Below are positions 10,873 through 32,000 of a stretch of DNA of 32,000 nucleotides, in pieces. Position 1 is the stretch's first letter. Every line of letters starts with the position of its first letter. Source of the stretch: Wallemia ichthyophaga EXF-994 (lineage: Eukaryota > Fungi > Basidiomycota); NCBI RefSeq assembly GCF_000400465.1, contig NW_008806293.1, forward strand, positions 32,601 to 64,600. The letters are read 5' to 3'. The notes beneath the pieces were generated by a model. That model was not told where the DNA came from, made no database searches, and was given only the letters and a program-made list of their open reading frames with translations. The position numbers were made by a program, and so were the translations under genes.

Positions 10873-10985
10873 GTTGCACATAATTACCCACACTTTTTTT
10901 CTTCACTTGAGCACACCTATCTACACTAAGGAGTCTGTTAACTAACTAATTTGATGCATTTAACTAATACGTTTAATTATGTGTT

Positions 10986-12701
10986 TTAATTGGCATTAAA
11001 ATCGCCTTGCTTCTCTTGAGCATCTTGGTCAGTTTCGCCAAAGTCAGCTGGGACAGAGTAAAGGCGAATGATGGACTATGTGTTGTTAAAAAAAAAAAAA
11101 ACGGTCATCCGTCTCAAGCTGCTACTCACTCTGTTTGGATCCTTGATGAGAATGTATTTACCTTCAGGCTGGTTCTTGACGAGATCAACAATAGTGCGAA
11201 CGATGCCGAAACCATTGCTGAGTGTAATATGGAGTTGTGATGCCAAATCCTTTGGCTTATAAGACTGCACACCTACGATGACATGCTTCGATTCATCTCT
11301 AGGGTTAGCTCTGCTGATGAAACCGAACTTCATCTGGTCAGCGCCAGCGAGAATAGATTGAACAGCCCATCTAGCGAGCTTGGCAGAGTTATTTTTGAGC
11401 TCAGTAGCGACAACAGCACCTCGTTGTGAGTCGAGCTTAGTTCTCCAGTCGAGTGCACCACCTGAGCCTTGAGCTTTGTGATCAAATTCGTTGAGAGCGC
11501 GAATGGTAATTTGTGGAGTTGGAGTTGGATCCTTCTTCTTGAGATTAGGAACGTACGCATCTAGCTCTGTCCTAACTATCAAGTCCATCTTTTCAGAATC
11601 GTCGATAGCGAGATTGAATTTTCTGTACTTGTAAACATTCTTAGCAAGTGGATCAGGCTCATCACCGGAGTGGAAGGGATTAGATTCGCCGACAGGCTTT
11701 GGTTTGCCTTCCTCATTGGTTACTTGAGTTGTGTAATTGTGGTTAACATAGGTAGCTTCGAAAGAGAGACTGGCGGGGGTGTTGAGCGTCTCCTTATCAT
11801 TTTCCATTGGGGGGTCAGCTGCGTTTTCGTTGACAGAAGCGAAATCGAAAGGACCACCTTCACGTTTGTCGAGGAAGATTTGGTTACCCTTGCGCACAAC
11901 GACCAAATCCCATGGATAAACAGATCTAGCAGAAGTCATGAGTACAGACAAGACGCAATCAGTTGCGAAAACTTGAGCTTTATCTTGTTGAGCGAGTTTC
12001 TTTATGACGGGGTCGACAGAAGTAGAGGGATTGTAGCGTGTACGGTCTTTAATTTCGAGAGGTTTCTCATTTTTAGTATTGATTCTATCGAAAGATCTAT
12101 CATAAGGATATAATTGACCGAAAGATTCAACATCTTCACCTTCATTGACATCCAAATTGAGTTTGTTGAGCCTAGGGAAGTCAATTTCAGCGATATTTTG
12201 CCATTCAGGTTCAACTTGAACGGATGCGTCACGTATTCTGTTCGGTTTATCCCAGTCTTTCCAGCCCATCTTTCTGTGAGTGCGTGGTTGTTGCTTTTGT
12301 TGAGTTTGTTGTTGTTGTTGTTGGCGTTGGTTAGTGTTTGTACGGGTAGGAGTAGGTCTAGAAGGTTGAGTACGAGATTGTTGACGTTTACCCAAAGCGA
12401 CAGTTCTCTTTGCAGAGGTTTTGTTATCAACCAAGCTGAAAGACGCCTCGTCTTCGCCATGAATGTAACCGAAAGCGGTGGCAGAACCAGAGCCATATAT
12501 AGATTTCTGTAAAGGTTTCAATTGCTTATTAGACTGCTTTGATTGATCATCCTTCAAATCCAAGTTAAAATCAGCGATTTGAGTTATTTTATCAAATTTT
12601 GAGTACGGGGAGAAAGGAATTTCATTGAATCTGTTGGATTTATTGTTAACTGGAGGACCAAAGTTTTCATTTGAAGATAATTTCGGTAATTTAAATTCCA
12701 T
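10986..12701 (-). CDS. EIF3D: Eukaryotic translation initiation factor 3 subunit D
   Basis: MEFKLPKLSSNENFGPP...PFSPYSKFDKI...VFATDCVLSVLMTSARSVYPWDLVV...LDWRTKLDSQRGAVVATELKNNSAKLARW...KDPNR, intron 11129-11076, then SIIRLYSVP...*. Confidence 0.96.
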
Positions 12702-12746
12702 TTGTTGGGTGTTGTTGCGGTTCAAGGAGCTCAGTTCAATTCACCC

Positions 12747-14433
12747 ATGGCAGATAAAGAAAGAAAATTGAATTCTAAAGTTGCTTACTTTTACGATCGT
12801 GGGTTTAATAATCTGGGCTTTACGATACATTCTAATCCCCTCACAGCCGACGTCGGCAACTACTCTTACGGTTTTGGTCACCCAATGAAACCTCATAGGA
12901 TGAGAATGGTACATAATCTCATCTTGAATTACAATTTAGATAGTAAAATGTCTTTATTAAAACCTCCGCGCGCATCTCCTGAAGAAATGACTCGATTCCA
13001 CACCGACGAGTACATTGACTTCCTTCATCATGTCACTCCAGAGACTGCAACAGATTTAACTAGGAATCATGAAATCTGTTGGTCTATACGCCCCTATTAT
13101 ACTCCTGTTCACTCTTTTTAGTCCTCGCAGGTGAAGATTGCCCTTCTTTTGAAGGTTTGTTCGAATTTTGCTCGATTTCTGCAGGCGGTAGCATTGGTTA
13201 GTGCTTATTTACTCTTATATCCTCTTTCTAAGCTTATTTCCCTTTAAAGCCGCCGCAAATAGACTCACTTCCGGTGAATCTGACATCGCTGTCAATTGGG
13301 CAGGTGGTCTTCATCACGCTAAGAAGAGAGAAGCTTCGGGTTTCTGCTACGTTAATGATATCGTCCTCTCTATCATTGAACTCCTTCGCTATCATCAACG
13401 CGTTCTCTACATTGACATCGATATCCACCACGGTGATGGCGTTGAAGAAGCTTTTTATACAACTGATCGCGTACTCACTTGCTCTTTCCACAAATACCCT
13501 GACTACTTCCCTGGCACCGGATCAACTGATGATACTGGTATTCATAACGGTAAAAATTACTCCATCAACTTCCCTCTAAGGGACGGCATAGACGATGACT
13601 CTTATCAGTCCGTTTTCAAACCCACCATTCAACGTATTATGGAATATTACAGACCTGGTGCTGTTGTCTTGCAATGTGGTGCTGATTCTTTAGCTGGCGA
13701 TAAATTAGGTGTCTTCAATCTTAGTATGAAAGGTCACGCTGAATGTGTCGACTTTGTTAAGAAGTTTGACCTTCCAATGATAGTACTCGGTGGTGGTGGT
13801 TATGCTGTTAGGAATGTGAGCAGGACGTGGACTTACGAAACTGGTTTGCTAGTAGACAAACAATTAGAAGAAGATTTGCCCTTCAACGATTATCTCGACT
13901 ATTACGGCCCACGTTATAAACTTGAAGTTCCAGAAACTAATATGGAGAACCACAATACTCGGGAATACCTTGACGACATACAGCAAAAAGTTTTCGATCA
14001 TCTCAATCACCTTCCCTTTGCACCATCAGTCCAGATGCGTGAGGTACCTTCAGATCCATGGACTTACAGTGATCATTCGGACGACGAATTAGATGAAAAG
14101 ATCTCCAAAGCCGCTAATCAGATTAATCAGGTGTATGAAGAGCCTGAAATGGAGGAGGATGACTATCAGTCTGCTTACAAGAACAGATCAAATAGACTTA
14201 ATGGCCGTAATCGTACACAAAACCTACAGCGACAGAAGAGAAAATTCTTTCAGTCTGCCGCTATATCTAGTGCTCAACAGCAGTTTACTCATAATGATAA
14301 TGGCTGCGGACATTCACATCTACCCAAACCTCAACTAGACGATTTGCTCAAATTGGTAGTCGGTTCATCAGCACAGAAGAGACCGACGCCTTCACGAACA
14401 CATATATACGAACAATCTCCCGAGTATTTGTAA
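12747..14433 (+). CDS. RPD3: Class I histone deacetylase, Rpd3/Clr6 type
   Basis: [83 protein letters not shown] and [14 protein letters not shown]. Three short introns near the 5' end. Confidence 0.95.
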
Positions 14434-14457
14434 ATTATCATATGTATTATTATCCTT

Positions 14458-15578
14458 TTAATCGTTTTTAATCGAATTGGTTAGCGTAGCCCGTAGCGTG
14501 TTGGAAAATATGTCGACTGTGTCGTCCTCGTTGAGCGTGATAGGTGGTGTGCGTGAGAAGCCAACACCTGCCGGGGTGCCTGTCCAAAGGAGCGAGCCGG
14601 GCTCGAGGGTGGTGCCCTGAGAGAGGAATGCAATTGTCTCAGCGAGGGAGAAAATTTGCTTGCTAAGGGAATGCTAGTGAGTTTGATATGTTGATACATT
14701 CACTGTAAACGTACCTAGTTGAGCCATTTTGTAACACATTACCATTAACTCTCGCACCTAGGTGCACATTATCTGCATCTATGCTTTGTGCACTAACGAG
14801 ACATGGACCCCATGGAGCACTCCCGTCAAAGGACTTACTGAATCCCCATTGACTAGTAGCGCCCTGGTGTCTGCGTACACTAACATCATTTCCCAGACTG
14901 TAACCTAGCACATGATTGAGAGCGTCACCAACAGTGACATTCTTAGCTGGTGTGCCAATCACCGCAACAAACTCGGCTTCGTAGTCCACTTTGAACTTGG
15001 AAGACGGCTGCGAGACGCGTGGAATAGGGATAACGTCATTTGGACCACTCAGCGCCGTTGAGGGTTTGTAGAATAAGATTGGGGCTTTAGGGAGCTGCAT
15101 ACCACACTCTTCCTGTATGCGGATTTAGTGGAATGGTCGCCAGTATGTCATACACACCGCATGGTCTCTATAATCTGAAATATAGTTATGAATGAAAAGT
15201 GATGAGGATTGGCTACCTACTCAGGCCGAGAAAGCGTGATGTCACAACCTCATTTGAAGCTATTGGTGATAACAGTTGTGAGACTGTCTTAACTTCGCCT
15301 GTGTGTCGGGTGGCGGTGAGAGCGGATCGTGTATCGAGAGTTTCTGCCTGGATGTGAGATTCTGTGCCAACTGAATTGATATGGAGTGATATTGGTGGGT
15401 GAAAATTTAACTGCTAAAAACCCACCATCGATATTTGAGAGTAGTGGCTCGCCGATGTAAATACGACCGTCTTCTTTAGCGGTGAAACGAATTAGGCGAT
15501 TCCATTGCTGTGTAGGTAATTCGTTGGTGTCAAGTATTTTAGCTACCAAAATCTCACTCTTATCGCGCTTTTACTCAT
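14458..15578 (-). CDS. Fumarylacetoacetate hydrolase-family protein
   Basis: Spliced MSKSAIRQWNRLIRFTAKEDGRIYIGEP...GLNYRDHAEECGMQLPKAPILFYKP...VDYEAEFVAVIG...NDVSVR...FSKSFDGSAPWGP...FLSQGTTLEPGSLLWTGTPAGVG...KND*. Includes a 17-nt exon at 15174-15158. Confidence 0.9.
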
Positions 15579-15735
15579 ATTGCTGGTGGTATTGGATTGA
15601 GAGGGTAATAACGCGTATAAAGCGTGTAAAATGGATTCAAAATGAGTAATTGGATAAACAATTCCAGTTATGCCATCAAATAGACCCTTTCTCCAATCCA
15701 AAATCACCCCACACTGCCCCTTATCGCCAACGATC

Positions 15736-16481
15736 ATGCTCAAATCGATAAACACTTTCATTTTCGGACTTTCACCTGAAGAGAGAGTGCGTAAATGGCA
15801 GTCAAATCTCCGAAGAGAGCAGCGTGGACTTGATCGCGAAATTCGCCAGCTCGATCAAGCCATTTCTCGTACCAAATCATCTCTTAAGCAGGTTGCTAAA
15901 CGGAATGACACAAAATCATGTCGTATATTAGCAGTCGAGATAGTTAGATCTAATAAGCAGAAAGAGCGCCTTCTCTCAAGCAAAGTACAACTTAATTCGA
16001 TATCCATGCAGCTATCGTCGCAGCTTTCGACGATTAAAGTTACTGGCAGCCTTCAAAAGAGCACAGAAGTCATGAAACTGTCCTCAAATCTCATTAAGCT
16101 ACCACAATTATCCAGCACAATGAGCCAGATGTCTGAGGAAATGATGAAGGTGCGTAGATATATTACCTGTTACTTGGCTAACATTATTCAGGCAGGTATT
16201 ATGGATGAGATGCTGCAGGATACTATGGAAGCTAATGATGAGGATGGCGTCGAAGAGGAGGCGGATGAAGAAGTCGATAAGGTTTTGACTGAGATCACCG
16301 GTGGAAAACTCTCACAAGTCGGCTCAGTAACTGATAAGCCATTGCCTGTAAGTGTTTTCCTATGCTGGAAGATTCACAATACTAATCAAACTCAAAGGAG
16401 ATTGAAAACGAAAGCGAGCAGGCGAATGATGAAGAGTTAGAGAAGATGCAGAAGCAGTTGGATGGTTTGTTGAGAGGTTGA
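15736..16481 (+). CDS. VPS24: ESCRT-III subunit Vps24/CHMP3 (Snf7 family)
   Basis: MLKSINTFIFGLSPEERVRKWQSNLRREQRGLDREIRQL...CRILAVEIVRSNKQKERL...GSLQKSTEVMK...EMMK/AGIMDEM...EEVDKVLTEIT. Two introns; ends MQKQLDGLLRG*. Confidence 0.92.
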
Positions 16482-16621
16482 TACTAGAACACAAACACCA
16501 AACACACATGATATCCTTTCTATTGATAGATACATACATTCAGAGCGATATAAATAATATAAATACACGCTAATTGTACATCTCAGTAATAAGTATTGGT
16601 GATAGTGCTCAGTATGCCTTT

Positions 16622-19353
16622 CTATTCACCGGATTCTGCATTGCCATCTTCCTCCGCCACTTCTTCAGCATATTCGGCTCTACGCTTTAATTTTTTTGAC
16701 TTCTTACCCTGTTTAGCACCCCCTTTACCCTTCTTCGCTGGCGCCTCTTTGTCCTGATAGCGCAGACTACTGCTCCACTCCATTGCCCAATTGTCGTATT
16801 CAATTGACATTTCTGTAGACAGAATGCGTCGTGCAACCGTTTGGACTGGCTGTTTATCAGAGATGAATCCATGTAATTTCATTACTTGCATCATATCACC
16901 CTCAGTGATGCGATTCGGACGTCCCATCTGCTCAGCTCCATCCGTCAACGCCTCGATATACTCCATGCACCGCTCCATCAACACCTCCTCCGTTCCCTTC
17001 TCAATTGCTAGCTTTGGGCCTGAACGATTCTGATTCATGAACCTTTCAAAGTGTTTCTTTATCAGCGTTTGTGTGATGTTAGGTAAACGCCTTCTGACGC
17101 CCCTGGCCTTGGCGTTTGTGCTGCGTGATTTACCGGTGTTTCTTTGTCCCTTAAAATTGGATTGTGTGATTGTGCTGTGTGTTGTTAGTCAGAAAAGTAC
17201 GGGGGTGTGAGTGACCCACACGTCAGGATCTTCGCCGTTTTCCTCATTCTCATCCTCCTTTTGCTTGCGTAAGAGCGGGTCAAGAATTAGATCTTCTTCG
17301 TCAGCTTCAGCTTCATCGTCCACAGATTTGGAGCGTGGCCTTATAGCCATAGAGTCGTCGGCAACGTTACCACGCTTCTCGACATTATTATCATCAGCTT
17401 CAACTTGGGCTTCTGGCTCGGCTAAATTCCAGTCATCTTTTGGTAGATCTTCGCCCGGCTGCATAACTTCGTCTTCCTCCCATGCATCGTCTGCTTCTTC
17501 TCCGCCCTCAGCCACCTCAGCATCAATCATGTCGTTCGTAGGTAGCATATCGACCAGGTCTTCTACAGGCTCCTCTTCGGCTATATCCTCGCCTTCTGGC
17601 TGCTCGCCAGGATTCATGACTGATGATCTGTCCTGATCACCCCTTCCACGATCGCTTTCATTATCGGCTGGTATCTCATTCTCGAAAGGAACCTCACCCT
17701 CGATTGGTTTGGGTTCCCCAAATTGATCGGGATCTTCATCTTGTGCATCTTCAATAGCAGGTGAGCTATCCTGATTGTTTTTTTCATCTTCTATCGCCGC
17801 TGAAGACCTATCCTGAGTGTCTCTTTCACGTGGACTTTGATAAAAAATTGATGATCTATCTTGGGACATTCTTTCGCGCTGGCTTTCATTCAGAATTGAA
17901 GATCTGTCTTGAATATCTTTTTCGTGTGGACTTTCATTTATAATTGAAGACCTCTCCTGTGTGTCTCTATTTTGTGGACTTTGATTGAGAAGTGAGAATC
18001 TATCGCGAGCACTAGGAGCATTTTCACTCCCGTCCGACTCTCGAGGACGTTTACTACCTCTACTACTTCTGCTACTGAGCAAACTTGAGTTACTCTTGTC
18101 AGATAAACTCTCATTAGGGCGAGAGCTCTGAGGCGATACCTTTTGCCTTTCTAAGGATTGATCGGAATGAGGGCTTTGAGAGGGGTGTTGACTGAGGCTT
18201 TTTTCGGTAGAATCCCTATCATATTCCGTTGAATGAGGTCTAGATTCCGAAAGCCGTGCACTTTCGATGGACGATCTCCTCTCTTCTCTGCTATTGGATC
18301 TCATGGATTCCTTTGAGCTGTTTGTCAGTAAATCATCTTGAGTGCTATTGCTCCTCTGCTCAGTCAACTCATTTTCATTATTATCATCGAGCAATATGTC
18401 ATCACCATCGACCTCATCCAGCATAACAGGTGGCTGTCTTTGAGCCAAGCTCGACTCATTACCTATTTCCAGAGTTTTATCATCTCCATAGAAGAAGCTG
18501 CTTTTATCAATTTGAGCAGACTTTCTTGTTGAAGTGTTATCTAGATGTAAAGATGGGTCATCCATCAGGCTATCACCACTATTTAGCTGGATAGAGTCAT
18601 CTTTCATATCTGCGCCTAAACCCATACCAAAACTAGATCTATTGACCATACTGAGTCTGAAGTCGGCTGGAGCACGTTCACGTCGAGCCAATTCAGGAGC
18701 TTCTGTATCGTCAAAAGCAGAGGTATTTGATGGTGAGCGTGAGATTGGGCGGTGTTGTTGCCAATACTCATTGACGCTTACAGGACTTTCAATAGTGACG
18801 ATTGAAGCAGGGGAGTCAGTTAGAGAGTGAGGAGTTGGCGGTGGTGGCATAGAAGTTCTCTTAATACCTCTGTATGCAGAGGATCGCCTTACAGTTGGAG
18901 GAATGTTAGGAGAAGATTGCTGAGGGGTGTGTGAGGATTGAGCGGATTGAGCAGATTGAGGTGGATGACGAAATGATGTTGATTGACGGCGTGAAGTTGG
19001 AGTTTGTTGAGTTTGTGCGGGTAATTCGACTGGTGGTGACGGTTTTGGTACACCGGGAGCTATAAAGTGGTTAGAGGGATATTATTGGTTGTTATTGATA
19101 TACCTTTGGTCAGCATTCTTAGTAAGTTTCGCGGAGTTTCACGATCGGAAGTTGAATTGAAGTTTGATTCAACGCGAATTGGAGTTTGTTGAGCGCGAGT
19201 TGGTGGTAAAATACGCGTACCACGTGGTGTACGACGCGAAGGAGTTGGAGGCTGAGATTCTCTAGCCCTGTTTGGCGTTGGAATTGGCGGATAATTCTTC
19301 CTTTTATTTGGCGTCGTCATGAGGGTAAGTTGATAAGGATTTTTGTTGGACAT
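16622..19353 (-). CDS. CENPT: CENP-T/Cnp20-like inner kinetochore protein (long disordered N-terminus, C-terminal histone-fold-like domain)
   Basis: Intron 19103-19060 and a second intron near 17175-17219 join ORFs 19060..19353, 17189..18850 and 16622..17038. N-terminal ETPRNLLRMLTK resembles the CENP-T TPRxLL motif. C-terminal LPNITQTLIKKHFERF...ITEGDMMQVMKLHGFISDKQPVQTVARRILSTEM resembles the CENP-T histone fold. Matched from memory, no HMM run. Confidence 0.65.
17801..18004 (-). repeat. Degenerate 48-nt (16-aa) coding tandem repeat, about 4.25 copies
   Basis: Units start at 18004, 17956, 17908, 17860 and 17812: DRFSLLNQSPQNRDTQ / ERSSIINESPHEKDIQ / DRSSILNESQRERMSQ / DRSSIFYQSPRERDTQ / DRSS. 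Confidence 0.9.
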
Positions 19354-19437
19354 AAAAGGTATAGTAATTAATAATTATACAATCTGACTTAATTTATTGA
19401 ACGCTTGTTTTATTGTTTGTTATTTGGTCTGAGTTCT

Positions 19438-20062
19438 CTATTTATCCATTGTATATTGAAGATTTTCATCATTTTCAGATTGAACACCACAATCACAATC
19501 AAAATGATTTGATAGAGTGGTGCAATCAAATTGAGGCTTTTCTAGCCTTTGATTTACTAAATTATGCATATTGCACAACCAATCAGAGGCAGCTTTGTTT
19601 GAGGATGTCTGTGAGTGTAGATATTAAGTGAGAGGCAATGAATTTCAAATATATAACAACCTGAGGTGGAAACTTGAGTAGAATGTTTTGAAAGTGTTGA
19701 CTACATTCCTCGCAGGGATATAGCTCACTAAACAGGTAAAAGAATTGGGAAAGCTTCTGAGATTGATCTGGAGTTGGATTCTAATAAGCCAGTTAGAAAA
19801 TCAATAACATCCTCACAACTCCATCAAACCTCGGGAAATTTAAAAGTCAAGTTATGGAGGAATTTCCAAGTTGAGTGGCCTAGTTCAGCTCTATAGATGT
19901 GTTAAAGATCTTTTATTGGAATTTACTTGAAACTAACTTGTAGCTCTTGTAATTTGAAGATAAAAGATTGACTTTGAAGGGTTTTATTGAGTGTATTAAT
20001 ATTATAGTAAAGCTTATTATTATAAAAGATGTCAATGCTATCAATTTTCTAATCAAATTCAT
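19438..20062 (-). CDS. ERV2: FAD-linked sulfhydryl oxidase Erv2 (Erv1/ALR family), N-terminal membrane anchor
   Basis: Four exons give MNLIRKLIALTSFIIISFTIILIH...KAELGHSTWKFLHNLTFKFPENPTPDQSQKLSQFFYLFSELYPCEECSQHFQNILLKFPPQTSSNKAASDWLCNMHNLVNQRLEKPQFDCTTLSNHFDCGCG...MDK*. It has the CxxC active site and the C-terminal CGC typical of Erv2. Confidence 0.92.
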
Positions 20063-20108
20063 TCCTTTATTCTCCGAACCCGCTAACGACTTAACCACCA
20101 TCGCATAA

Positions 20109-20826
20109 ATGATCTCAGCCGCATTACAAAGATCAAAATTTAGTTTAAATTTACAGCCATTTAAAAGGCTCTACTCAAATAAGCAAACTGTACCACAAAA
20201 AACTACGCACGATGAACAAATCAAAGAGCACAGAGAATCAGGCTTAACAACTCCACATCCACCAAAGGACGTTTTGACAGCTGAAGTTATATCAGGCGCT
20301 CCAGGTTGGTTATTTTAGACTTTTCATTTTACTTGAATGTTGATAATTCGCTTAGAAACACTTCAACATCGCCAAGTTAGAATTTATAAGCCAACGAAGA
20401 ATACTATGCAATCTGGTACTCACAATACGCATCACTGGAGAGTAGATTTTGATATTTTACAAGGTGGTGGTAGATGGGAGCATCCTTTGATGGGCTGGTC
20501 TTCATCGTGAGTTTGATTTGGTTATCACAGAACTCAACTAAAGTTATTATAGAGCTGATCATATGCAAGGAACAAACGTCAAATTCCAATCAAAGGAAGA
20601 TGCCATCAACTTTTGTGAGAAGCAAGGTGAGTAAGATGAATATAATCCCCCCATTCTAACAAGAAACAGGCTGGGATTACTTTGTTTCAAAACCACGTTC
20701 CCCAAAGTTTAAAACAAAGCAATACGCTGCAAACTATTACCACTGTGAGTTGACTGCCTTGGTTGATATCTCCAAGCTAACAATCCCAAAGCACCTGGAA
20801 AGTTACGCTTAGCTCAGACAAAGTAA
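20109..20826 (+). CDS. NDUFS4: NADH:ubiquinone oxidoreductase subunit NDUFS4 (21 kDa Fe-S protein 4), mitochondrial
   Basis: Basic presequence, then AEVISGAP/ETLQHRQVRIYKPTKNTMQSG...WRVDFDIL...RWEHPLMGWSSS/ADHMQG...FQSKEDAINFCEKQ/GWDY...KQYAANY...PGKLRLAQTK* across four short introns. Confidence 0.93.
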
Positions 20827-20960
20827 ACGCGTTTAAACGCGTAGAATCGCGTCAATCAAGTAAAACGAATTAAAACTTTTATTCCAAATCCATTCAATTT
20901 CTTTATTTGTAAATTTATCCACGCGTGTCCAATCACTTTCTATTTTCATTATCAACCGTC

Positions 20961-23904
20961 ATGTCGATTTTGAGTACTTCACCTGCAAAATCATTCTTAA
21001 GCAGAAAAAAGCATTCTTCGCAGCCAGATATACATATATCGCAGCAACCAACACAACAATTCTACACCTCCAACGATATCAACACCAAGGACTTCTGTAA
21101 CTCATTTTGGGGAGTAGATAGTAACGGATATGGATTTGATACTCTTACAAATAAACTAAAGTCTTCTTCAAAAACTGTTGATGATCTTAAGTTATTTTGG
21201 AAGGAAAGGTCGGCAATTGAGGACGAATACGCCAGAAAAATGGCAAAATTATCGCGATTTTTGGTTGGAACTGGTGAAACTGGAGCAGTTAGAGATAGCC
21301 TCGATACTCTCAGTACGGAACTCGAGCAAACATCACAGAATCATTTCAATCTTTGTCAAACTATCCATAGGGACTTGGAGAGACCAACGAATGAATGGTC
21401 TATTCGTTTATCCAATTTAAAGAAGAGCTCCCTTGCGACTATTGAAAAGAAGTACAAAGTTCTCCAAACTCAAGAAAGTTATGTTGATAAGGTCCGTCTT
21501 GTTTCCTCTTTTATGCAATCAACTCATTTTTTCCTCAGGCTAAAGCTAAATATACTGACAATTGCGTTTCTATCAACACTTTCACCGCACAAAAGTCTCT
21601 CTTACAAGGCAAAGACCTTGATAGAGTTGACGTTAAACTCGAGAAAGCTAAAAGTGTTGTTGGCGCTAATGAGCGTGACTATCAAAACTTTGTTAAAGCC
21701 CTTTCTGATACTCGTAAGCGTTGGGAAGCTGACTGGCGTATGTTTTGCGATCTATGCCAGGATGAAGAAGAAGAGAGGATAGAATTCTTAAAGTCAAATA
21801 TGTGGTCATACGCTAATGAAGTTTCAACCGTGTGTGTTGCAGACGATGAAGTGAGTTTATTTCGTTGGTTTACATTCTAACTGACGTCCGTTAGTCGTGC
21901 GAGAAACTTAGACAATCTCTTGAACAAGTTGACCCCGAGCTGGATGTTGAATTCTTTGTTGATGAGAGTATGACTGGCAACATTCTTCCAAGTCAGTTAT
22001 GTTCTAGTACAAACAGAATACTTGCTCACAAACATACAGACCAACCTACTTTTATTGATTTCTCACGTGAAACTCAAGTTCCATCACCCGCTCCTAGGTA
22101 CGCTACCTTCCATAGGAACAGCATTCGTCCGCTCGATATGCCTAGGGACTCACACCGCCCATTACAATCTCACAATCAACCACCTAAGCATGAGGTTCTC
22201 GATCATCCACCTCCATCATCTCCAAAGAAGCAAGTCGTTCAAGAGGAACCCAAACTTCAAAAGTCTCAACCAAAAGAGTCTTCTCATGATGAAAACGCAC
22301 CTTTCAAAGTACCTCAACTTCCTGCTCGTAATATCGATCGACCACCTCCGACTAAAGTCGAACCACCTTCATTTGATACTGCTTCCGCGCCTCAAACAGC
22401 TCCAAAGTTTGACGAAGCTCCACCTAGACCGGAAAAGGAGGACAAAGTTGAAACAAAAAAAGAATCAGGGGATGTGGATGAACTTGCCGCCGCTCTTGCT
22501 CAACTTAGAAACGCTCCTCCAGCAACGGGTAACCTTCGCGCCAATGTCGCAGCACAGGCGGAGAAGAAGCCACGTTCACGACCTGTATCACAGCATTCAG
22601 CTGTATCACCTGGTCCACAGGTAGGAGCGCCGGCGGGACAACAGGTATCTCCTACTAAAACTCAGCAACAGCCTCAACGACCTCCATTCAACCCTCAGAA
22701 TCCAATCTATCAAGGGATGGACGCCTCACAAATCCAGGCACTTCAAATTCAACATAAGTATGCACCTCACACCACCCCTCCTTTCCCTGCCATGATGCAG
22801 CGTCCAACGTCGAGCCAATCTAATGCGGGCGGACCCGTTGAAGACGTGATGACAACGTACCATCAACAGCTGCCCCACGAAAGAAGTCATCGAAATTCGC
22901 GTTTGGATCAGACTCAGCAAACTCAACAGCACATCTCCAGACCTCCCTCATCGACGGGTAGATCACCATCAAGAGAAGGCTTTGCAGGTATTGGCGCTGG
23001 CGGTGGTTTTGGTGCTAGTTACGGTAGCAGACAGCCTTCTCCAGCTGTCAGCAATGCATCACCGGTCCGTGCCGCAACCCCCCTAGGTATAAGTTTAAAT
23101 GCATCTGGAGAGGTAGCACACGATCAAAAAGCGGAGGAGTACAGGAAGAGACGTTCTGTTTCACCAGCGCTTGCACCTGCACCATCTGCTACTCCTGCAC
23201 CTGCTAACACACTCGCCAATCAACAGCAGCAGATGCAGATGCAACAGCAGCATCAGGCTCAGGCATACTATCAGTACCAAATGATGATGGCTCAACAGGC
23301 TCAGCAAGGCCAAGGTCAAGGCCAGCAACAACAACCACAGCATCCTTATCAGCCATACCAGTATTATCCATATGGACAGCCACAACAACAACCATACGTT
23401 ATGACGACGACACCAGGACCTGGATACAACCCATACCCACCAAGCAGTACGCCGGCACCAGCGCCTACCCCTGCTCCGAGTGGCCCAATTATGAATGCCC
23501 AACAGCAACATCGAGCACCCTCCCCATCTCCAACGCCTATATACAATGGAACACCGGGGCCACATCAACACCAGCAAAACCAGCAAACACCTTTTATTCC
23601 ACAAATTCAAACGCAGCAACTCTCTCACACGCCACAAATACACAGCGCCACAAATACATCAATGTATAGACAACACTCACCTTCGCCGCTTGCCAGTCCT
23701 AGCAAGGAACCTATCCTCTTCCATGTCAAAGCACTGTACGACTATGCAGCACAGACGACCGAAGAGTTTGATTTCAAGGCAGGCGACGTGATTGCTGTTA
23801 CAAAGACACCCGAAGACGGGTGGTGGACCGGACAGCTTACTGATGAGGCTCGATGCCTCCCTGGAAAAACTCTCTTTCCTTCTAATTTCGTCTCTTTGTT
23901 TTGA
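20961..23904 (+). CDS. F-BAR/SH3 (PCH family) cytokinesis protein, Cdc15/Hof1/Imp2-like
   Basis: FCNSFWG...GFDTL...KERSAIEDEYARKMAKL F-BAR start, ERIEFLKSNMWSYANEVSTVCVADDESCE, a Pro/Gln-rich middle and a C-terminal SH3 (VKALYDYAAQTTEEFDFKAGDVIAV...DGWWTG...LFPSNFV). Two introns. Confidence 0.9.
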
Positions 23905-24306
23905 TTATAAATTTCTTTGTGTATTAGTATATATTCTCTTGTTCATCTCAGTTTGCAGGATCAGCGGTTGATAATGTGATTTAGAACTTCTTAGCACTAT
24001 ACATGATTTAATGACTGCTCTAGAAAAGGACAAAGGGCCGCAAACGCGCTCCATCAATGCTTCTAATTTCATCTTGCCGGTTAACAAAGAAATTCCACAG
24101 GAAGAAGAAGCCATTCGGTCCTTATATGTAAAATGAAATCAGGAAAAATTCTGTATGCCAAAAAGAAATGTAAATCAAGCAATGGTAATGAACCATGTGA
24201 GCTGGAATGTGACTCAAGTGCATGGTCTAATTATACCCAAATACTGCTACTAGTTTGAGTCGTGTAAACACCTAACTCACGCTTTAACAGCATTTTAGAC
24301 AATGCA

Positions 24307-25237
24307 TTTCTCCTGAACGAACAACATTCACGCCTTAATACTTTGAAGTATTGAAAATACTTCCATCTTTTCTGCTTCTTTGCTTTACAAGCCAATCTTT
24401 AGCCACTAGTCTGAAACTCACAAGATTTGCTTAACTGCTCATTCTGCAATGAAAGATATTGTTCACAGGCATCATCAACGAAATATTAAAAATAATGGGA
24501 TATATGTATGTGAGTGATATAGCTGACGATAATTGATGCTACAAATTCACACCCTAGTCAAACTGTACTAGTGCTACCAAAGAATTTGCTACCAAATCCA
24601 ACTTTAGGTGTGTTAAGTTCCGGACTTTTGCTCGAGGAATTGCTTTTACATCGAATATAAAAGATGAAACATAATAATTTAGTTTGTTTACAGTAGTGAG
24701 ACTGTCGTACCTTGGAGATATACAATGTGAAAACATTCTCGGAGGTTTGGCCAAGAATGCGGCGAGGGAGAAAATAAGGAGAAAACCTCAAGATGCGTAG
24801 ATGAATTTCATGAAGTGGGGGGTGTTTAAAGGATGCTTCAAAAGTGAACGAGTAGAAATTCTGGTCAAAGAAAGGATATTAAGTCTTGCAGAGTAACGAA
24901 AGCACCGGTGTGACGTGAACAATGTTTACTTAGATGATTGAATGAAAGAAATTTAAGGGTAAAGTACGCCAGTGACTACTTAGTATTGAAGCTCTCAGAA
25001 TTGCACTATACCGCAAGAGGGATAACATAGAAAAGCCCAACACTTGGACAGTTGTAACTCTGATGACATAAATTGAAGGCGAAAATGGAAATTGATCGAC
25101 AGTTGATACTAGAACTGGAAAAGAAGCAAATCTACTCTAAAGATAAGAAGGCCGTCGTGTCACTATTGACATCTAAGGAGCGTTAAAGATGTTATTATTA
25201 TGCAAAACAAATCGAAGACGAGATCTAAACATTTGTA
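24307..25237 (+). repeat. Left arm of a 931-bp perfect inverted repeat
   Basis: Line-by-line comparison shows it is the exact reverse complement of 26364-27294; paired coordinates always sum to 51601. Confidence 0.97.
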
Positions 25238-26363
25238 GTGAAAAAAGTCGTATAAATTAAGCATTCGCGCGAACTATTGTAAACTCAAGTTAAAATAAAA
25301 CATATCAATGTTTGCATTTCGGTTGAGCTAAATTCGATAAGCATGCCTTTTCCATCATAACAAAGTTATAGCCATAGGTGCCTCTCTCAGATTTCAAACT
25401 ACTAAGTTTAACACTTTGTACAAACACAACTGTTTTACCAAGATAAGGACTCAGTAATCGTAAAATAGGTTATGATTGTAGTTCAGAATTTAACTAAAGA
25501 ACATTTTTACCTATGGTATTTCAAATGTATCAGAAGCGACTAAAACTATCTTTAAGCCAAAGAAAAAAAATGAACAATTTGACAACAAGAAAAGCAAGGT
25601 TTTGGCAGCATACATCTATAAAGTTTAAAAGAAAAATTTGGACGCAAAATTCAAATAGTTTAACTGTTAATTCGAAATTTGTCAAAAGGGAAATAAAAGT
25701 TCCGTTGGATCGATCATGATTAGGAGACTCAATTAGGAGCGATATTAAACAATATGGCCTTCAATTCCATCTAAAATGCTAATAGGACCCCTACTGCTGA
25801 TTAACTGCCATGAATGTGCTTGCCAGCTTCTGTTTCCTTGATATGATCGTGGTTATCAAATTTGGAAAATGAATGCCTTAGACATCGTGATTCAATCTAA
25901 TTGCCACTTGTAGTCACAAAAGAGTGACTTCGTAAATATCAAATGAGAATGACGAAATGATATTTACGAAAGCCAGTTTTAGCCGTAAGCTTCTATTTTA
26001 GAATTTCACTGCTCATTCCATTTAGGGTCGACATTATGAAGAATGCAAAAAAAATCGAATATGTAGAATGAAGGGGTTTCTGAGGTCTTAAACATGGCTC
26101 TGGCTAAGTCTCAATTAGTGAACCTTAATGTTGTACATTAAAAAATTAAAACTTTTAGAGACATTAATTAAAAAGTATCACTTCCCGTCTGTGTAGTTTT
26201 TTTTCCTGTCTGGGCCTTCTTGTGATGAAAATGAAGAATCATGATTTAAATTTATCATAGCTTGTCTTCTAATGTAAAAGCAATCCAGACCTCGATATAA
26301 GTGTCCCTACAACATGCGATTCTCATAGCTCACGCGAATGCTTAATCTATTCGACTTTTTCAT
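25238..26363. other. 1126-bp unique AT-rich core between the inverted arms; candidate centromere core or invertible segment
   Basis: Hand count 363 G+C in 25261-26340 (about 34%), versus about 47% in a sampled CEF1 line. No credible spliced gene found. The function is inferred from architecture only. Confidence 0.55.
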
Positions 26364-27294
26364 TACAAATGTTTAGATCTCGTCTTCGATTTGTTTTGCA
26401 TAATAATAACATCTTTAACGCTCCTTAGATGTCAATAGTGACACGACGGCCTTCTTATCTTTAGAGTAGATTTGCTTCTTTTCCAGTTCTAGTATCAACT
26501 GTCGATCAATTTCCATTTTCGCCTTCAATTTATGTCATCAGAGTTACAACTGTCCAAGTGTTGGGCTTTTCTATGTTATCCCTCTTGCGGTATAGTGCAA
26601 TTCTGAGAGCTTCAATACTAAGTAGTCACTGGCGTACTTTACCCTTAAATTTCTTTCATTCAATCATCTAAGTAAACATTGTTCACGTCACACCGGTGCT
26701 TTCGTTACTCTGCAAGACTTAATATCCTTTCTTTGACCAGAATTTCTACTCGTTCACTTTTGAAGCATCCTTTAAACACCCCCCACTTCATGAAATTCAT
26801 CTACGCATCTTGAGGTTTTCTCCTTATTTTCTCCCTCGCCGCATTCTTGGCCAAACCTCCGAGAATGTTTTCACATTGTATATCTCCAAGGTACGACAGT
26901 CTCACTACTGTAAACAAACTAAATTATTATGTTTCATCTTTTATATTCGATGTAAAAGCAATTCCTCGAGCAAAAGTCCGGAACTTAACACACCTAAAGT
27001 TGGATTTGGTAGCAAATTCTTTGGTAGCACTAGTACAGTTTGACTAGGGTGTGAATTTGTAGCATCAATTATCGTCAGCTATATCACTCACATACATATA
27101 TCCCATTATTTTTAATATTTCGTTGATGATGCCTGTGAACAATATCTTTCATTGCAGAATGAGCAGTTAAGCAAATCTTGTGAGTTTCAGACTAGTGGCT
27201 AAAGATTGGCTTGTAAAGCAAAGAAGCAGAAAAGATGGAAGTATTTTCAATACTTCAAAGTATTAAGGCGTGAATGTTGTTCGTTCAGGAGAAA
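26364..27294 (-). repeat. Right arm of a 931-bp perfect inverted repeat
   Basis: Exact reverse complement of 24307-25237. The ORF track also shows mirror-identical short ORFs (24554..24754/26847..27047 and 24558..24791/26810..27043). Confidence 0.97.
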
Positions 27295-28389
27295 GGCGTT
27301 GTCGGAATTGAGATGAAAGTAGTTGGCTTTTTTCAGCAATTCAGAATGTTTTAATTTAAGTTGTAAAGAATCGGGTCAAGGTGGAGTTGGTTGCGTGCCA
27401 AGCGTCTTCCAGTAAGTGATGGATGTCGCATTCCCCGCTTTCTTTTCGCTAATGCGTTGGATTATATATTTCTAGTTCGTACCTCCGATCTTTATATCTA
27501 GCATTGTAATTATTCATGTTTAAGGTTGAGGCTAAGTGGTTCTCCCTCCCCATTATTTTTCAGCTCACACTACCCACCAATATAAACATTTCAAAGAGTC
27601 GCTGCATTGCAGTTCTGATCAATAAAATGAATCACGTAGAGCAAGGATTTATTTAAACTGGTGTAATCAAGGTAAGAACGACGTGAAATGCTCTTGATAC
27701 GACCGACCCACAGCATCTAATTCCTGAAATATTTGTCATCGTATTGTATAGGGAAAATTACAGACTCCTTTGGCCTAATGAATTAGGTACATTTAAAAGC
27801 TTATGATCGACCCGATATACCCTCGATTGAGTGCTTCAAAGTGATGCTGGACCGTAAACTCCGTTCAGCTTGAAGGGTGTGAATAAATTCGACAGGCTCC
27901 GCAACTGGGGGTGGTTTTACGTCTCCACCAGAGCAACCCTAAACATGTTCGTTGGAGACTTCCATAAGTCGCAAATCATCCATTAGAGCTTAAGCAAGTG
28001 TATTAGATAATACAATTTGGAGGATTTTGGGGAGATATACGTTTTAAAAGCTTATTCTTAGTCCCGTAGAGCTGATAGGGATGACGGTGTCACAAGATTG
28101 TCATTCTCTAAAAACACTGCGCTCGCCTTAGCGCTTACTTCGCCATTTTGCAGCGTAAATAGTGCAACATAAACCAAGAAGCCATTTGATACTGCATTAG
28201 ATAACCCATGATGATGGACTTAGCATTTCAAATACCCTGCTATCTCATCATGTCGACCTGAGGTCATCAGTGATACGGGGCAAATGTTTTATTTTAGTGG
28301 TTAGGGATGTGAAGCAAGATAACATGTTACGGCGAATTATTTACATTACTGAAGCCGATCAGGGATTCGTGTTTCCCGACAATCAAGTG

Positions 28390-29900
28390 ATGAATTTACC
28401 AGAAGGAATTTTGGGTCTATTTGTAACGTCTTTTGAGCCTGGCGTTGGTAACAGCATTATTTGGAAATACAAAAATCCCTGTAAGCTACATGCTGACTTA
28501 ATATCACCCACTAATCAGCTCCAGCCAATGACGAGGACCCAGAGATGGATGGGGTGGAGTACACCTCTATGCCATCTGGAATGCATTTGATGAACTCCGA
28601 CGAGATATATTTCACTACGGAAGGCGACAACCATGGAATTGCTATCTATAGAAAGATACCTTCAGCCGATCAACATGAGCGTGGTGTTAAGATGTTTTCA
28701 GTCGGGGTGATCACGAGAGGCACTTACACACCATATGATTACTTACCGGAACTAGAGGAACTCTCTCTATATTTACTGACAAACCGCCCGTCCGATGTTC
28801 TGCTTGAGATGTTTTTTGCTCCAATACAATCATCTGACAATGATCACATTACCCAGCAATCACCATCACCTAAAGCACTTTCGCTGCTTTTCGATGTACT
28901 TGGCCCGCTGCTGCTTCTGCTGTTCAGATTGCTGCTTGCACAAAAGCGAGTAGTGATATTTTTTCGCCCTACCGAAGGAAAAGGAGTTGGATGGATTAGC
29001 GCAGCTTTAAAATCTTTCTCCGAAATTCTCAACAATGATGATGATGGACTTATCAGTGAATCTAGAACTCGCTATATTGGTAATGTTGGTTTGACCGATT
29101 TAGAGCGTTTGGAGAGTGTAAAGCGTGGCTATATAGCATGTGAGTAGTACGACAGTTTAAATTATCACTAATGCGGTTTCTTAGCTACCACCGACGCGTT
29201 GTTATTGGAGAAGCCCCAGGTATATGACGCAATTATAGATTTATCACCCAAAGTCAAATACCCCTCCCTATACATATCACAAACACATGAAAAGGGCGCG
29301 TTACTTACTAGGCAGACCTACACGCTTGCTGATTTAAACCTCTGGAGGAAGCTGAGAAGTAGAATTGATTCTCAAACTCTCGTTTCTTCACCGCCTTATG
29401 GGTTTGCGGACCTCTTTGCGGATATATGGAGCTCTATCTTTGGGGCCAATAGCAAAATGAGTATACCATCGCCAACACCGAGTGAATATTACCCAGAAAA
29501 CGAACCAAACACAAATGAAGATGACGAAGTCAGACTTTTAAGGAAGAGCCTCAACCCGTCACCTGCTATAGCAGCTTTCATGAAGAACTATTCTAATGCG
29601 ATTCTTGCTAGTTTACTCGCGTTGGCACTAAAGCCAGATTATGACCACAATGAAAACGTTAGAGATGAAGATCACCATCAAATAGACGGTGACAATGTTA
29701 TCAACGATGATAGACCGCTTGAGCTGTCAGCAGCAGATCTACTGACGCTTGGGTTGTCACCACTTAGTGATGTCGATAGTCTAGTGGCTAAGACAATATC
29801 AAAGACGGAATTGGGAAGGAGTGCAACCGTCTCGGTCAGTTGTGCTTGGTCTGTAGCTTCCTTTGTACGTCGCCAATTCTTAAGTATTGGCTGGATATAG
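28390..29900 (+). CDS. DUF2347/DUF4484 DENN-like protein (Anr2/DENND11-like)
   Basis: MNLPEGILGLFVTSFEPGVGNSIIW...DGVEYTSMPSGMHLMNSDEIYF...ERGVKMFSVGVI...GYIASTTDALLLEKPQVYD. Two short introns join the track ORFs. Confidence 0.78.
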
Positions 29901-30045
29901 CCTTTTTAATGCATATATAACGTGGAATTCAAACCATATTGTGTATAAAAGGGTAACAAATCAGGAACGCGACAATAAAACAAATCAAAAAGGTAGTATG
30001 AAGTCCCATTAGAGTAGAAAATCTATTTGTGTCAGAACGAGTCGC

Positions 30046-31138
30046 TTACTCTGGTTTTTTGGAGATAAATAACATCATCGGGGTGAAGAGTTTCTTTTGA
30101 CCACCTTCGACGAGAGCATCAGCAGCGACCTTGAGTGATTCTCCAACTTCAAATGTACCCTTTGGTACAACGCCGAACCTCTCGAGTACCTTTATACCAT
30201 TTTGAGTCACAAATTTACCAACGCTTGTCATTCTCCAGACTGTGAAAATATCCCACAAGTTTTGACATTTTCTGATATCTCCTTCTAATGGATAGTACCA
30301 TGGTATAGGATCCGGTCTAGCTGCAAGGTCTTCCTCGTGGAGAATCTCGAACCCGACCTTTTTCAAAGCGTTACGGGCATTTTCAACGTTACGCATTTCT
30401 GGTATACCATCGCCGACTTCAATTCCGTGAGCCACTCTCTTGTGCTCAGGGTTGCGTGGGTCCCATTCGTCGGTCATACACCATTCGCTGTGGAAAAATT
30501 AGAATGGAGGAGGGTACTTGAAAGTGTACTTACTAGACACCAAAGATACCACCTGGCTTGAGGATCTTCTTAATTTCATTGTAAACACCCTCGAAGTTTG
30601 GAGCGTGAACGGTAGCCTCGATAGCGTAGACAGCATCAAAAGAGTTTTCACCGAACTGTTCGGACAACTTCATGAAGTCACCCTTGACGAAATCAACTTT
30701 ATCTTCAAGACCAGCTTTCTTTGTGTATTTTCTTGCTCTCGCGACTTGGAAAGCGTTGTTGTTCAGACCGACAATGTTGGCATCTGAGAAGGTAGCAATC
30801 TCTCTGGCAGGGCCACCGACACCACAGCCGACATCCAAGACCTTCATGCCCTTCTTCAAACCGATGTTTGAGGACAAATAATGCTCATGTCTGGCCAAAG
30901 CTTGATAGAAGCCCTCACCCTTGTAATATCTACAGAAGTGGAAGGAAGTGCCCCATCCGTACTCGTAGAGCTCAGTAGCGCCATCGTAGTAGCCGTTGAC
31001 GACATCTTTGTAGACGTCCAACCTGTTTTGACGATCGGTTTCTGAGTCGTTCGAAGAATCTTTTTGCCAGAAGTTGTTGTAATTCTCGATACCAGCGTTT
31101 GAGCGCTTTCCGTCGTCTTGCTTGTTGTAAGTTGACAT
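30046..31138 (-). CDS. ERG6: Sterol 24-C-methyltransferase
   Basis: [48 protein letters not shown]; intron 30533-30488; [17 protein letters not shown] and [14 protein letters not shown]. Confidence 0.97.
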
Positions 31139-31218
31139 TTTACGTTGTGAGAGTTTGAGACCAAGACTCAACTAAATAATCAGCGCACTTGAGCTCGAAC
31201 TTCTAGGCGGGAAATTAA

Positions 31219-32000
31219 ATGTAAGAATCAGATCATAAATAGGTTCTTCAAAAATTTATATTGGCCTAGGAGTAACACGATAAATATATTTCCTCTGCAA
31301 AATTATACGTTTACCACGCGTGAAGCTCAACCGGAAGAAGATGCAAGGTATGGTCTGATACGCGAGCGTGGATGTCTATTGATCGATTATATAGCGTTGC
31401 TGCTAGATTACAAAGGCTGCAAAACAACTACGAGGATTTCGGTACGCTTCTACTTGATGTTTCCCGCCAAGTTAATCAGTATTTCAGGTATGAGACGCAC
31501 AGTTGAAGGTATAATGGTCGTACACGAGCATGGTCACCCTCATATTCTCATGTTGCAGATCGCCAACGCGTTTTTTAAGCTGCCTGGAGACTACCTCACC
31601 CCCGGAGAGACCGATGAACCTGGATTGAAGAAGAGGCTGGATGACAGACTAGCACCGTTAGATCCAACAATGTTTGAGCCGGAGGATGGGGCGCTTAATG
31701 ACTGGGAAATTGGAGACTGTCTTGCTCAGTGGTGGAGACCCAACTTTGAAACATTCATGGTGAGTAGTCGTTGCCGAAAGCAGCCGAGACTGACAAGTAC
31801 AAGTATCCATTCATTCCTGCACACGTGACTAAACCAAAAGAATGCAAAAAGATGTATGTCGTCGACTTGCCGGAGCGAAGTGAGTCATTTTATTATTGGA
31901 TCGACGCAATCTGACTTTCTCTTAGAAGTGTTCGCCGTTCCAAGGAACATGAAGCTTTTAGCGATACCTGTGTTTGAACTATACGATAACTCAGGTAGAT
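31219..32000 (+). CDS. NUDT21: Cleavage factor Im 25 kDa subunit (CFIm25/CPSF5), 3' end outside the window
   Basis: Spliced MSNTINIFPLQNYTFTTREAQPEEDASVAARLQRLQNNYEDFGMRRTVEGIMVVHEHGHPHILMLQIANAFFKLPGDYL...[27 protein letters not shown]...VPRNMKLLAIPVFELYDN. The ATG is split by intron 31221-31269. Confidence 0.94.

Follow-up and report, generated by a model that had tools for sequence, protein, structure and literature searches.

A gene-free inverted-repeat locus as a candidate small regional centromere in Wallemia ichthyophaga

We found that a gene-dense region of the Wallemia ichthyophaga EXF-994 genome is interrupted by 4.4 kb of gene-free DNA in which two inverted, base-identical arms enclose a unique core, and we propose that the locus may serve one chromosome of this species as a small regional centromere. 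This reading is plausible but unproven, and we hold it tentatively. The DNA analysed, referred to here as the window, comprises 32,000 nucleotides of contig NW_008806293.1 (assembly GCF_000400465.1; positions 32,601 to 64,600 of the forward strand); the coordinates below are those of the window. The analysis establishes the anatomy of the locus, its lack of genes, its location at a gene-order break and the presence of a real repeat in other strains. A centromere is the best single hypothesis for the locus, though not an established one, and the strongest competing reading is that a chromosome rearrangement left a scar here that has no centromere role.

The gene-free stretch extends from the stop codon of one gene to the ATG of the next (23905-28323, 4419 bp) and is the only large gap in the window. 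The gene whose stop codon forms its left limit (20961-23904, + strand) encodes an F-BAR (FCH) and SH3 protein of the Cdc15/Imp2/Hof1 type, identified by Pfam matches to FCH and SH3, and has orthologues in W. ichthyophaga strains and in W. mellicola. A same-species Logan contig, L012, stops ahead of this gene. On the right lies a three-exon gene of the DENND11 (formerly DUF2347) family (28324-29900, + strand; Pfam PF09804), for which a splice model built from the sequence places introns at 28481-28518 and 29140-29184; a metagenome scan for DENND11 relatives returned nothing.

The earlier note had reported about 4.5 kb without a recognisable gene at this position, and our searches bear this out. 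The longest ORF in the stretch encodes 77 aa, the longest stop-to-stop frame (106 aa) compares with 97 +/- 19 in shuffled sequences, and coding potential is low across the 4.4 kb. A Pfam search of the stretch gave no matches of note, an Rfam search found no family even at E<=1, and a tRNA search found none; we thus rejected tRNA, snRNA and other known RNA genes as an explanation. Satellite or tandem structure was also rejected, as the search for tandem arrays in the stretch was empty. A search of 1.84 billion representative proteins found no homologue of the longest frame of the arm, and exact-protein look-ups returned no record for the 77-aa and 60-aa ORFs of the arm, the 68-aa ORF of the core, the ORF at 17189-18850 or a 644-aa last exon. 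A metagenome scan with an exact 24-mer from the arm likewise returned nothing.

Such a stretch is out of keeping with its surroundings. The W. ichthyophaga genome consists of 73.6% CDS and 1.67% repeats (PMC3849046), and annotated intergenic gaps in the corresponding region of the strain assemblies measure 25-141 bp. These values agree with the claim that all other gaps but one are 160 bp or less, while the apparent exception, a gap of 756 bp, contains an unannotated ERV1/ALR gene. Because the genome is so extremely compact and local gaps are so short, 4.4 kb that gives no signal of an ORF, a Pfam domain, an Rfam family or a tRNA is exceptional. An ORF-free region far longer than the usual spacers, one feature of inverted-repeat (IR)-type centromeres, is therefore present (4419 bp versus 25-141 bp).

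Within this stretch, the left arm (24307-25237, + strand) and the right arm (26364-27294, - strand) are perfect reverse complements of each other over 931 bp, with 0 mismatches, reproducing the arms that had been reported. They constitute the sole repeat of at least 40 nt in the whole window, and the length of this perfect match makes a chance origin impossible. A repeat finder extends the arms to 24282-25245 and 26356-27319 (964 nt, 99% identity). Between them lies a unique core of 1126 bp (25238-26363) without coding, RNA-family or repeat signal, such that a second feature of IR-type centromeres, a unique core between near-identical inverted repeats, is found as well. On the left, a unique spacer of 402 bp and 36% GC (23905-24306), without ORF or domain and 99.6% identical in two strain contigs (L006 and L007), separates the repeat from the F-BAR gene and presumably includes its 3' UTR. 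On the right, a unique spacer of 1029 bp and 41% GC (27295-28323), also without an ORF, presumably includes the DENND11 promoter; it does not resemble the sequence that precedes DENND11 in relatives.

The inner margins of the arms carry information about the history of the repeat. Over 36 bp (25242-25277 and 26324-26360), the inverted repeat continues into the core in diverged form, at 86% identity. The presence of such a margin beside a perfect 931 bp suggests, as far as sequence comparison can tell, an old repeat whose interior has been made uniform by gene conversion. The pattern of a perfect interior and an 86% inner margin might reflect concerted evolution of the arms, but the perfect identity may equally be a collapse in a short-read assembly. 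If the window stems from such an assembly, then neither the identity of the arms nor the orientation of the core can be trusted; the claim that the arms are base-identical stands for the given sequence, and part of that identity may be that of a collapsed repeat.

This concern leads to an alternative in which the inverted repeat, or the joining of the flanks across it, is unreal. A two-copy repeat that was collapsed and then used twice during a possible short-read assembly would yield identical arms and an arbitrary core orientation, and orientation errors of this kind did occur in K. phaffii reference genomes. We nonetheless consider an artefact highly improbable, since independent strain assemblies branch at the exact first base of the arm. 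The window is 99.8-99.9% identical to the assemblies of two other W. ichthyophaga strains, which were built with IDBA-Hybrid at k=120 (PMC6738226); the Wallemia-like host proposed in the earlier note is thereby borne out. In these assemblies, contigs L006 and L007 run through the left spacer into the arm and stop at 24425, 119 nt (k-1) inside it, and their final 128 nt also match 27176-27303 in reverse. That the contigs end exactly k-1 into the arm indicates that the repeat boundary is real in those strains. A SNP at 24303, at the arm boundary, differs between strains. An assembly graph that contains the arm twice permits only the order left flank, arm, core, arm, right flank, and the diverged mirror-image margins at the core ends are unique sequence that fits only an inverted repeat around a contiguous core. 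The strain assemblies comprise ~200-290 contigs each (PMC6738226), indicating that repeats capable of breaking an assembly far outnumber centromeres, a point that weighs against the centromere reading.

The base composition of the locus is unremarkable. GC content is 36.7% in the arms and 33.2% in the core, compared with 42.3% in the window overall; the core is near the ~34% GC claimed for it, but its description as AT-rich implies a special trough that is not seen, as a gene-bearing, non-coding-rich region at 19400-20100 also has 33% GC. Because the dip to 33-37% is that of ordinary non-coding DNA in the window, it does not serve as a centromere mark. A footprint of RIP or methylation was rejected, the TpA/ApT and CpG ratios being equal to those in genes.

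When we compared the synteny of the F-BAR and DENND11 genes with that of relatives, gene order was found to break exactly at the gene-free stretch with respect to genomes of the W. sebi complex, in which each of the two flanking genes lies within a tightly packed array of genes. Colinearity with W. mellicola stops at window position 23901, and colinearity with a second relative (L001) begins at 28366. A further relative of 86% identity (L005) is too short on the upstream side of DENND11 for comparison. In the W. sebi-complex contigs, neither flank carries any trace of the gene-free stretch, indicating that the element is lineage-restricted and that it could be plain rearrangement debris. No inverted repeat of at least 60 nt was present in ~95 kb of related Wallemia loci.

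Debris of this kind would be a functionless, non-centromeric scar, composed of an inverted duplication (arising, for example, through fold-back or template-switch repair) together with orphan DNA, which we regard as a serious but rather unlikely explanation. It would imply that two blocks of ancestral genes became fused in the lineage of W. ichthyophaga and W. hederae and that ordinary gene conversion keeps the arms identical, a history that we again judge to be on the unlikely side. The exact coincidence of the gene-free stretch with the gene-order break is what such a scar predicts, its lack of homology to anything fits junk, its composition is that of ordinary non-coding DNA, and conversion between nearby inverted repeats needs no function. 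However, in a genome that is 73.6% CDS and whose spacers are usually 25-141 bp long, a palindromic stretch of 4.4 kb that is prone to recombination and of no use should vanish quickly. In addition, we rejected pseudogene relics, as the stretch retains nothing of the genes found next to the flanks in W. mellicola or L001, and a contig break in W. hederae suggests that the stretch is older than the split from that species.

This break is the end of contig SPNW01000031.1 of assembly GCA_004918325.1, which falls ~390-490 bp past the stop codon of the W. hederae F-BAR gene, an observation that consists of the contig-end position alone. We estimated the chance of a contig end within such a small interval at ~1-3%, using for W. 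hederae the mean reported for W. ichthyophaga assemblies (286 contigs per 9.55 Mb). The W. hederae assembly probably breaks at the matching place, and the contig break suggests that the gene-free stretch predates the split between the two species.

The same anatomy could be that of a mobile element: the locus might be what is left of a foldback or long-TIR DNA transposon of the non-autonomous kind, or a pair of dispersed-repeat copies in inverted orientation, that inserted at or built up near a breakpoint. Foldback elements have just this layout, with a non-coding core between long terminal inverted repeats, RepeatMasker assigns ~85 kb of the W. ichthyophaga genome to DNA transposons (PMC3849046), and gene-order breaks often harbour transposons. 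The particulars of the locus make this origin distinctly unlikely. In agreement with what had been noted before, a scan for target-site duplications of at least 4 bp found none at any boundary offset, and Pfam and protein searches detected no relic of a transposase or reverse transcriptase. Moreover, no further copy exists in the 32-kb window or in the ~95 kb of related loci, the inner margin of the repeat decays gradually and has no sharp end, and the probable W. hederae break at the matching position is unexpected for a recent insertion. Foldback and other long-TIR non-autonomous transposons thus resemble the locus in their long inverted termini and short non-coding middle, but differ from it in target-site duplication and in the form of the margins, and the DNA covered here yielded neither additional copies nor transposase relics.

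We also weighed an unannotated functional non-coding locus, such as an lncRNA, a small-RNA hairpin, a DENND11 regulatory region of unusual length or a switch segment that can be inverted by recombination between the arms. If transcribed through, a perfect inverted repeat of 1 kb would give a long hairpin RNA, and methylotrophic yeasts switch their MAT loci by means of segments flanked by inverted repeats. The empty Rfam search speaks against the former, and for the latter the core offers no gene or promoter-bearing ORF to switch. A pheromone or MAT locus in particular was rejected: there is no pheromone-type CaaX ORF, no match to the published W. ichthyophaga pheromone candidate and no MAT gene in the window. 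We consider such a locus very doubtful.

The centromere reading is, by comparison, in keeping with the sequence-level evidence, in that each property expected of a small regional centromere of the IR type, where it could be addressed from sequence, appears to agree with what is found at this locus. The proposal of the earlier note that the locus is of this type draws its strength from the IR-core-IR anatomy, the gene-free setting and the gene-order break; the AT-richness of the core and the base-identity of the arms contribute less than had been stated. In such a centromere, CENP-A nucleosomes would occupy the unique core of ~1.1 kb, which would nucleate the kinetochore, and the two inverted arms of ~0.93-1.0 kb that flank this core would be kept identical by intrachromosomal gene conversion. 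The spacers of ~0.4 kb and ~1.0 kb would set this unit apart from the neighbouring genes, centromere identity would be set by structure, as in Komagataella phaffii, and the structure would have persisted since the split from W. hederae. We consider it possible, although somewhat short of probable, that W. ichthyophaga, and probably W. hederae, uses centromeres of ~3 kb built from an inverted repeat and a unique core, which would be the first outside the ascomycetes and independently arisen. With similar caution, we suggest that these centromeres operate in a genome that retains the CCAN and that they mark where a chromosome was rearranged in comparison with the W. sebi complex. Wallemiales appear to retain CCAN kinetochore proteins (PMC7794384), and a CENP-T-like gene is present within the window.

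If the locus binds CENP-A, then the IR-core-IR design evolved at least two times in fungi with very compact genomes, which would strengthen the idea that dyad symmetry of DNA helps to specify centromeres. It would also be the first IR-type centromere in a basidiomycete; our literature search found no paper on a Wallemia centromere or on an IR-type centromere in a basidiomycete. A centromere here would provide an easily cloned 3-kb element for stable vectors in an extremely halophilic fungus and, because the locus sits on a gene-order break, an anchor for karyotype reconstruction in the Wallemiomycetes. If it is not a centromere, the locus is a palindromic scar that stands on its own and has limited interest.

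The centromeres described in basidiomycetes are either large and transposon-rich (Cryptococcus and, in a survey from 2026, the majority of fungi) or short, AT-rich and repeat-free (Malassezia). Outside this group, the cnt/imr organization of Schizosaccharomyces pombe resembles the candidate locus in having a unique central core with an inverted repeat on both sides. Centromeres of S. pombe span 35-110 kb and include heterochromatic otr repeats; unlike them, the locus described here has no otr-like flanks, the genes on either side being no more than 0.4 and 1.0 kb away.

Malassezia centromeres are 3-5 kb long with an ORF-free core of <=1 kb, lack direct and inverted repeats, and are marked by sharp GC troughs (78% AT core) and enrichment of a 12-bp motif (PMC7025860). 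Chromosome breaks at these centromeres are documented (PMC7025860). The two systems have in common a compact basidiomycete genome, a short ORF-free core and an interspecies gene-order break at the locus. In contrast, the core examined here is 67% AT, like ordinary non-coding DNA: a GC trough of the Malassezia type is absent, the core having the same 33% GC as the 19400-20100 region. Nor does the locus share the Malassezia-type absence of inverted repeats, as it is dominated by its 931-bp arms.

Greater likeness is found among ascomycete yeasts. In Candida tropicalis and the C. parapsilosis group, inverted repeats stand on either side of a mid core within an ORF-free region (PMC7263194), and interspecies chromosome breaks in the C. 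parapsilosis group coincide with centromeres, as the gene-order break does with our locus (PMC7263194). The identity of those repeats is 85-99.8%, compared with 100% here (PMC7263194). In K. phaffii, which also has a compact genome, centromeres consist of a 1-kb mid region between virtually identical inverted repeats of 2.0-2.7 kb, lie within non-transcribed regions of 6-9 kb, and have a GC content just slightly under the genome mean (10.1101/056382). Those centromeres have been shown to bind Cse4, to occur once per chromosome and to have a mid region of polymorphic orientation (10.1101/056382), all of which would be predictions for the present locus. The present locus also belongs to a basidiomycete rather than to the Saccharomycotina. 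Its arms are shorter (0.93-1.0 kb versus 2.0-2.7 kb), as is its gene-free region (4.4 kb versus 6-9 kb). As the earlier note had proposed, the anatomy of the candidate locus nevertheless matches that of K. phaffii centromeres, at approximately half the scale: both have a unique mid region of ~1 kb, virtually identical inverted repeats and a single large gene-free region in a compact genome, with a composition slightly below the genome mean and no involvement of a sequence motif or transposon.

The locus is built around one inverted pair of sequences. A repeat finder run over the 32-kb window returned a single pair (24282-25245 / 26356-27319; 964 nt, 99% identity), and a base-by-base check found its interior to be perfect over 931 bp (24307-25237 / 26364-27294), exactly reproducing the arm coordinates of the earlier note; besides the arm pair, no repeat of at least 40 nt was found in the 32-kb window. 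The arms (36.7% GC) enclose a core of 1126 bp (25238-26363), whose ends mirror each other in diverged form (25242-25277 versus 26324-26360, 86% identity). The absence of genes was likewise observed directly: the stretch between the stop codon of an F-BAR/SH3 gene (20961-23904, +) and the ATG of DENND11 (28324) measures 4419 bp, so that the proposed desert of about 4.5 kb holds up. Within it, a Pfam search yielded no meaningful match, Rfam gave none whether the gathering score or E<=1 served as the cut-off, and searches for tRNAs and tandem arrays were negative; no RIP-like or CpG-depletion footprint was seen at the locus. Its ORFs do not exceed 77 aa, the longest stop-to-stop frame (106 aa) is as expected from shuffled sequence (97 +/- 19), and a search of 1.84 billion representative proteins returned no relative of the longest frame in the arms. 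The codon-usage score of the stretch (5.7-12.7) lies below that of held-out exons (17-33), a measure that is blind to short exons: since the small-exon ERV1 gene reaches just 10.1, short exons are not excludable on this basis. The AT-rich core described earlier does have a low GC content (33.2%, compared with 42.3% for the window). It is not a distinctive trough, because region 19400-20100 is as AT-rich as the gene-free stretch, and the argument from low GC therefore falls away. The window's GC maximum (53%) lies at 22500-23500, where the F-BAR gene encodes a low-complexity tail rich in Gln and Pro, and adjoins the AT-rich stretch.

Over 14.3 kb, the window matches two W. ichthyophaga strain assemblies at NCBI with 99.92% and 99.83% identity, from which we conclude that the host, previously called only Wallemia-like, is W. 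ichthyophaga; its eIF3d protein shares 89% identity with the W. hederae protein. The genome of this species comprises 9.6 Mb, with 73.6% CDS and 1.67% repeats (PMC3849046), and the genes annotated here in the strains are separated by gaps of 25-141 bp. The one other exceptional gap that the earlier note had counted corresponds to an annotated gap of 756 bp (19354-20108), which contains an unannotated ERV1/ALR sulfhydryl oxidase gene of several short exons (19474-20086, -), recognized by Pfam Evr1_Alr and by a W. mellicola gene (contig L008, 8550-9160). Because that gap bears a gene, the 4.4-kb stretch is the window's only large non-coding interval.

For the strain genomes, IDBA-Hybrid had been run on paired 150-nt reads with k up to 120 (PMC6738226). 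We found that the contigs of two strains, L006 and L007, both end at window 24425, exactly 119 nt (k-1) past the arm's first perfect base, and that the terminal 128 nt of each can equally be aligned, in reverse, to the right arm's outer end. Since contig ends at k-1 reflect the behaviour of a de Bruijn graph at the start of a repeat, 24307 is a genuine repeat boundary in independent strains. Furthermore, the diverged core margins are unique sequence that fits only as inverted copies on either side of a single contiguous core, and the two arm copies leave one graph path: left flank, arm, core, arm, right flank. Against these contig ends and mirror-image margins, an assembly artefact is scarcely credible. 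If the window is a short-read assembly, the orientation of the core is uncertain, and so is the 100% identity of the arms, because a collapsed repeat gets written twice; K. phaffii reference genomes carried just such a core-orientation error (10.1101/056382). At window 24303, where the repeat has its outer edge, the left copy reads T, whereas the right arm carries a C equivalent and L006 and L007 have C in their left copy; thus, the edge of the identical tract shifts by a few bases between strains, as expected, at this single site, if gene conversion still acts.

The earlier note had proposed comparing the F-BAR and DENND11 flanks among relatives. We found that window 10532-23901 is colinear with the W. 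mellicola contig, in which more densely packed genes resume 31 bp after the F-BAR gene, and that 28366-31999 is colinear with L001, a W. sebi-complex-like contig in which a DOP1 gene precedes DENND11 at a spacing of ~0.5 kb. (Contigs L001-L003 come from read sets SRR337699xx.) As both colinearities stop at the locus, the gene-free stretch is a precise gene-order break; the two genomes otherwise have "long syntenic regions" in common, and no relics of the neighbouring genes of W. mellicola or L001 were found in the stretch. A functionless inverted-duplication scar, left when a rearrangement brought the two gene blocks together, would account for this break, but would leave unexplained the survival of 4.4 kb of recombination-prone DNA among 25-141-bp spacers, apparently since before the W. 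hederae split; we consider such a scar possible, though unlikely. In W. hederae, whose coding DNA is only ~70% identical to the window, the contig with the orthologous block ends ~390-490 bp past the F-BAR stop codon, and the W. ichthyophaga strain contigs end 521 bp past it (402 bp of spacer and 119 bp of arm). From the average of ~286 contigs per 9.55 Mb in W. ichthyophaga assemblies (PMC6738226), we put the probability that a contig would end within so short an interval at 1-3%. Judged from the contig end, an assembly-breaking feature probably occupies the same place in W. hederae. Assembly-breaking repeats far outnumber centromeres, because the strain assemblies have ~200-290 contigs (PMC6738226). 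Public read sets hold at least one further Wallemia lineage, represented by contig L010 (Logan SRR5256705; eIF3d 81% identity, versus 89% for W. hederae); this contig continues ~1.8 kb past the F-BAR gene, then ends.

We confirmed the reported lack of a target-site duplication (none of at least 4 bp at any boundary offset) and of any transposase relic, and found no further arm copy in the window or the related Wallemia loci examined. These results make it improbable that the arms derive from a degenerate foldback or long-TIR element, or from two copies of a dispersed repeat. With nothing positive in its favour, an unannotated RNA, regulatory or invertible locus is decidedly improbable. A standard TIR transposon was rejected, as the available DNA contained no target-site duplication, transposase relic or other copy; a pheromone or MAT locus was also rejected.

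To the left of the gene-free stretch, at a distance of 4.5 kb, a large acidic, serine-rich gene (16622-19353, -) looks by sequence like a CENP-T (Cnn1) orthologue: the exon for its C terminus has a sub-threshold, near full-length match to the CENP-T_C histone-fold (E 6.9e-4, 20.1 bits, profile 5-99/108), and its W. mellicola orthologue has a CENP-T_C Pfam match on record. Its nearness to the candidate centromere is probably coincidence. NCBI models from W. ichthyophaga strains (protein P0124, 1047 aa) and W. hederae (1079 aa) fuse NDUFS4 to the downstream F-BAR/SH3 gene (window 20109-23904, +; L006 10001-13796; W. hederae contig L009 1-2542). These are two distinct genes in W. mellicola, and the fusion is probably a merged gene model. 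On the right, DENND11 (formerly DUF2347; 28324-29900, +) is 86% identical to that of L005, a contig of another Wallemia relative (SRR25399871). Its putative first intron (28481-28518) has just 38 nt (GTAAGC ... CTGAC ... CAG), and the ORF-based protein call P0121 from L005 continues in frame through the equivalent stretch. The 22 N-terminal residues before MNLPEG are not conserved in L005; the true start may be the second ATG.

Our literature search found no description of Wallemia centromeres, nor an inverted-repeat (IR) type centromere in any basidiomycete, in agreement with the earlier note. Wallemiales are reported to branch before the loss of the CCAN in Agaricomycotina (PMC7794384). Given its K. 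phaffii-like anatomy, its position on a gene-order break and the apparent retention of the CCAN, we tentatively prefer, among single explanations of the locus, an IR-type small regional centromere. Our data establish the anatomy, the lack of genes, the reality of the repeat and the gene-order break, and from this structure we infer all chromatin features; the reading is plausible but unproven, and the evidence from the strains, W. hederae and gene order lends it modest further support. The core would act as a CENP-A platform, gene conversion would keep the arms uniform, and the arms might define or insulate the centromere domain. If confirmed, the locus would extend a known structural kind of centromere to a new phylum, at a smaller scale.

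Its position on an interspecies break fits the centromeres of Malassezia, which coincide with such breaks (PMC7025860), and the IR centromeres of the C. parapsilosis group, at which such breaks also occur (PMC7263194). In K. phaffii, each centromere is the chromosome's single 6-9-kb non-transcribed region in a compact genome, with a 1-kb mid region between virtually identical IRs of 2.0-2.7 kb; sequences are unique to each chromosome and without a common motif, and Cse4 binding is strongest on the mid region and falls along the arms (10.1101/056382). Like our locus in its GC content, these centromeres are compositionally unremarkable, and the locus has the same anatomy at about half the scale.
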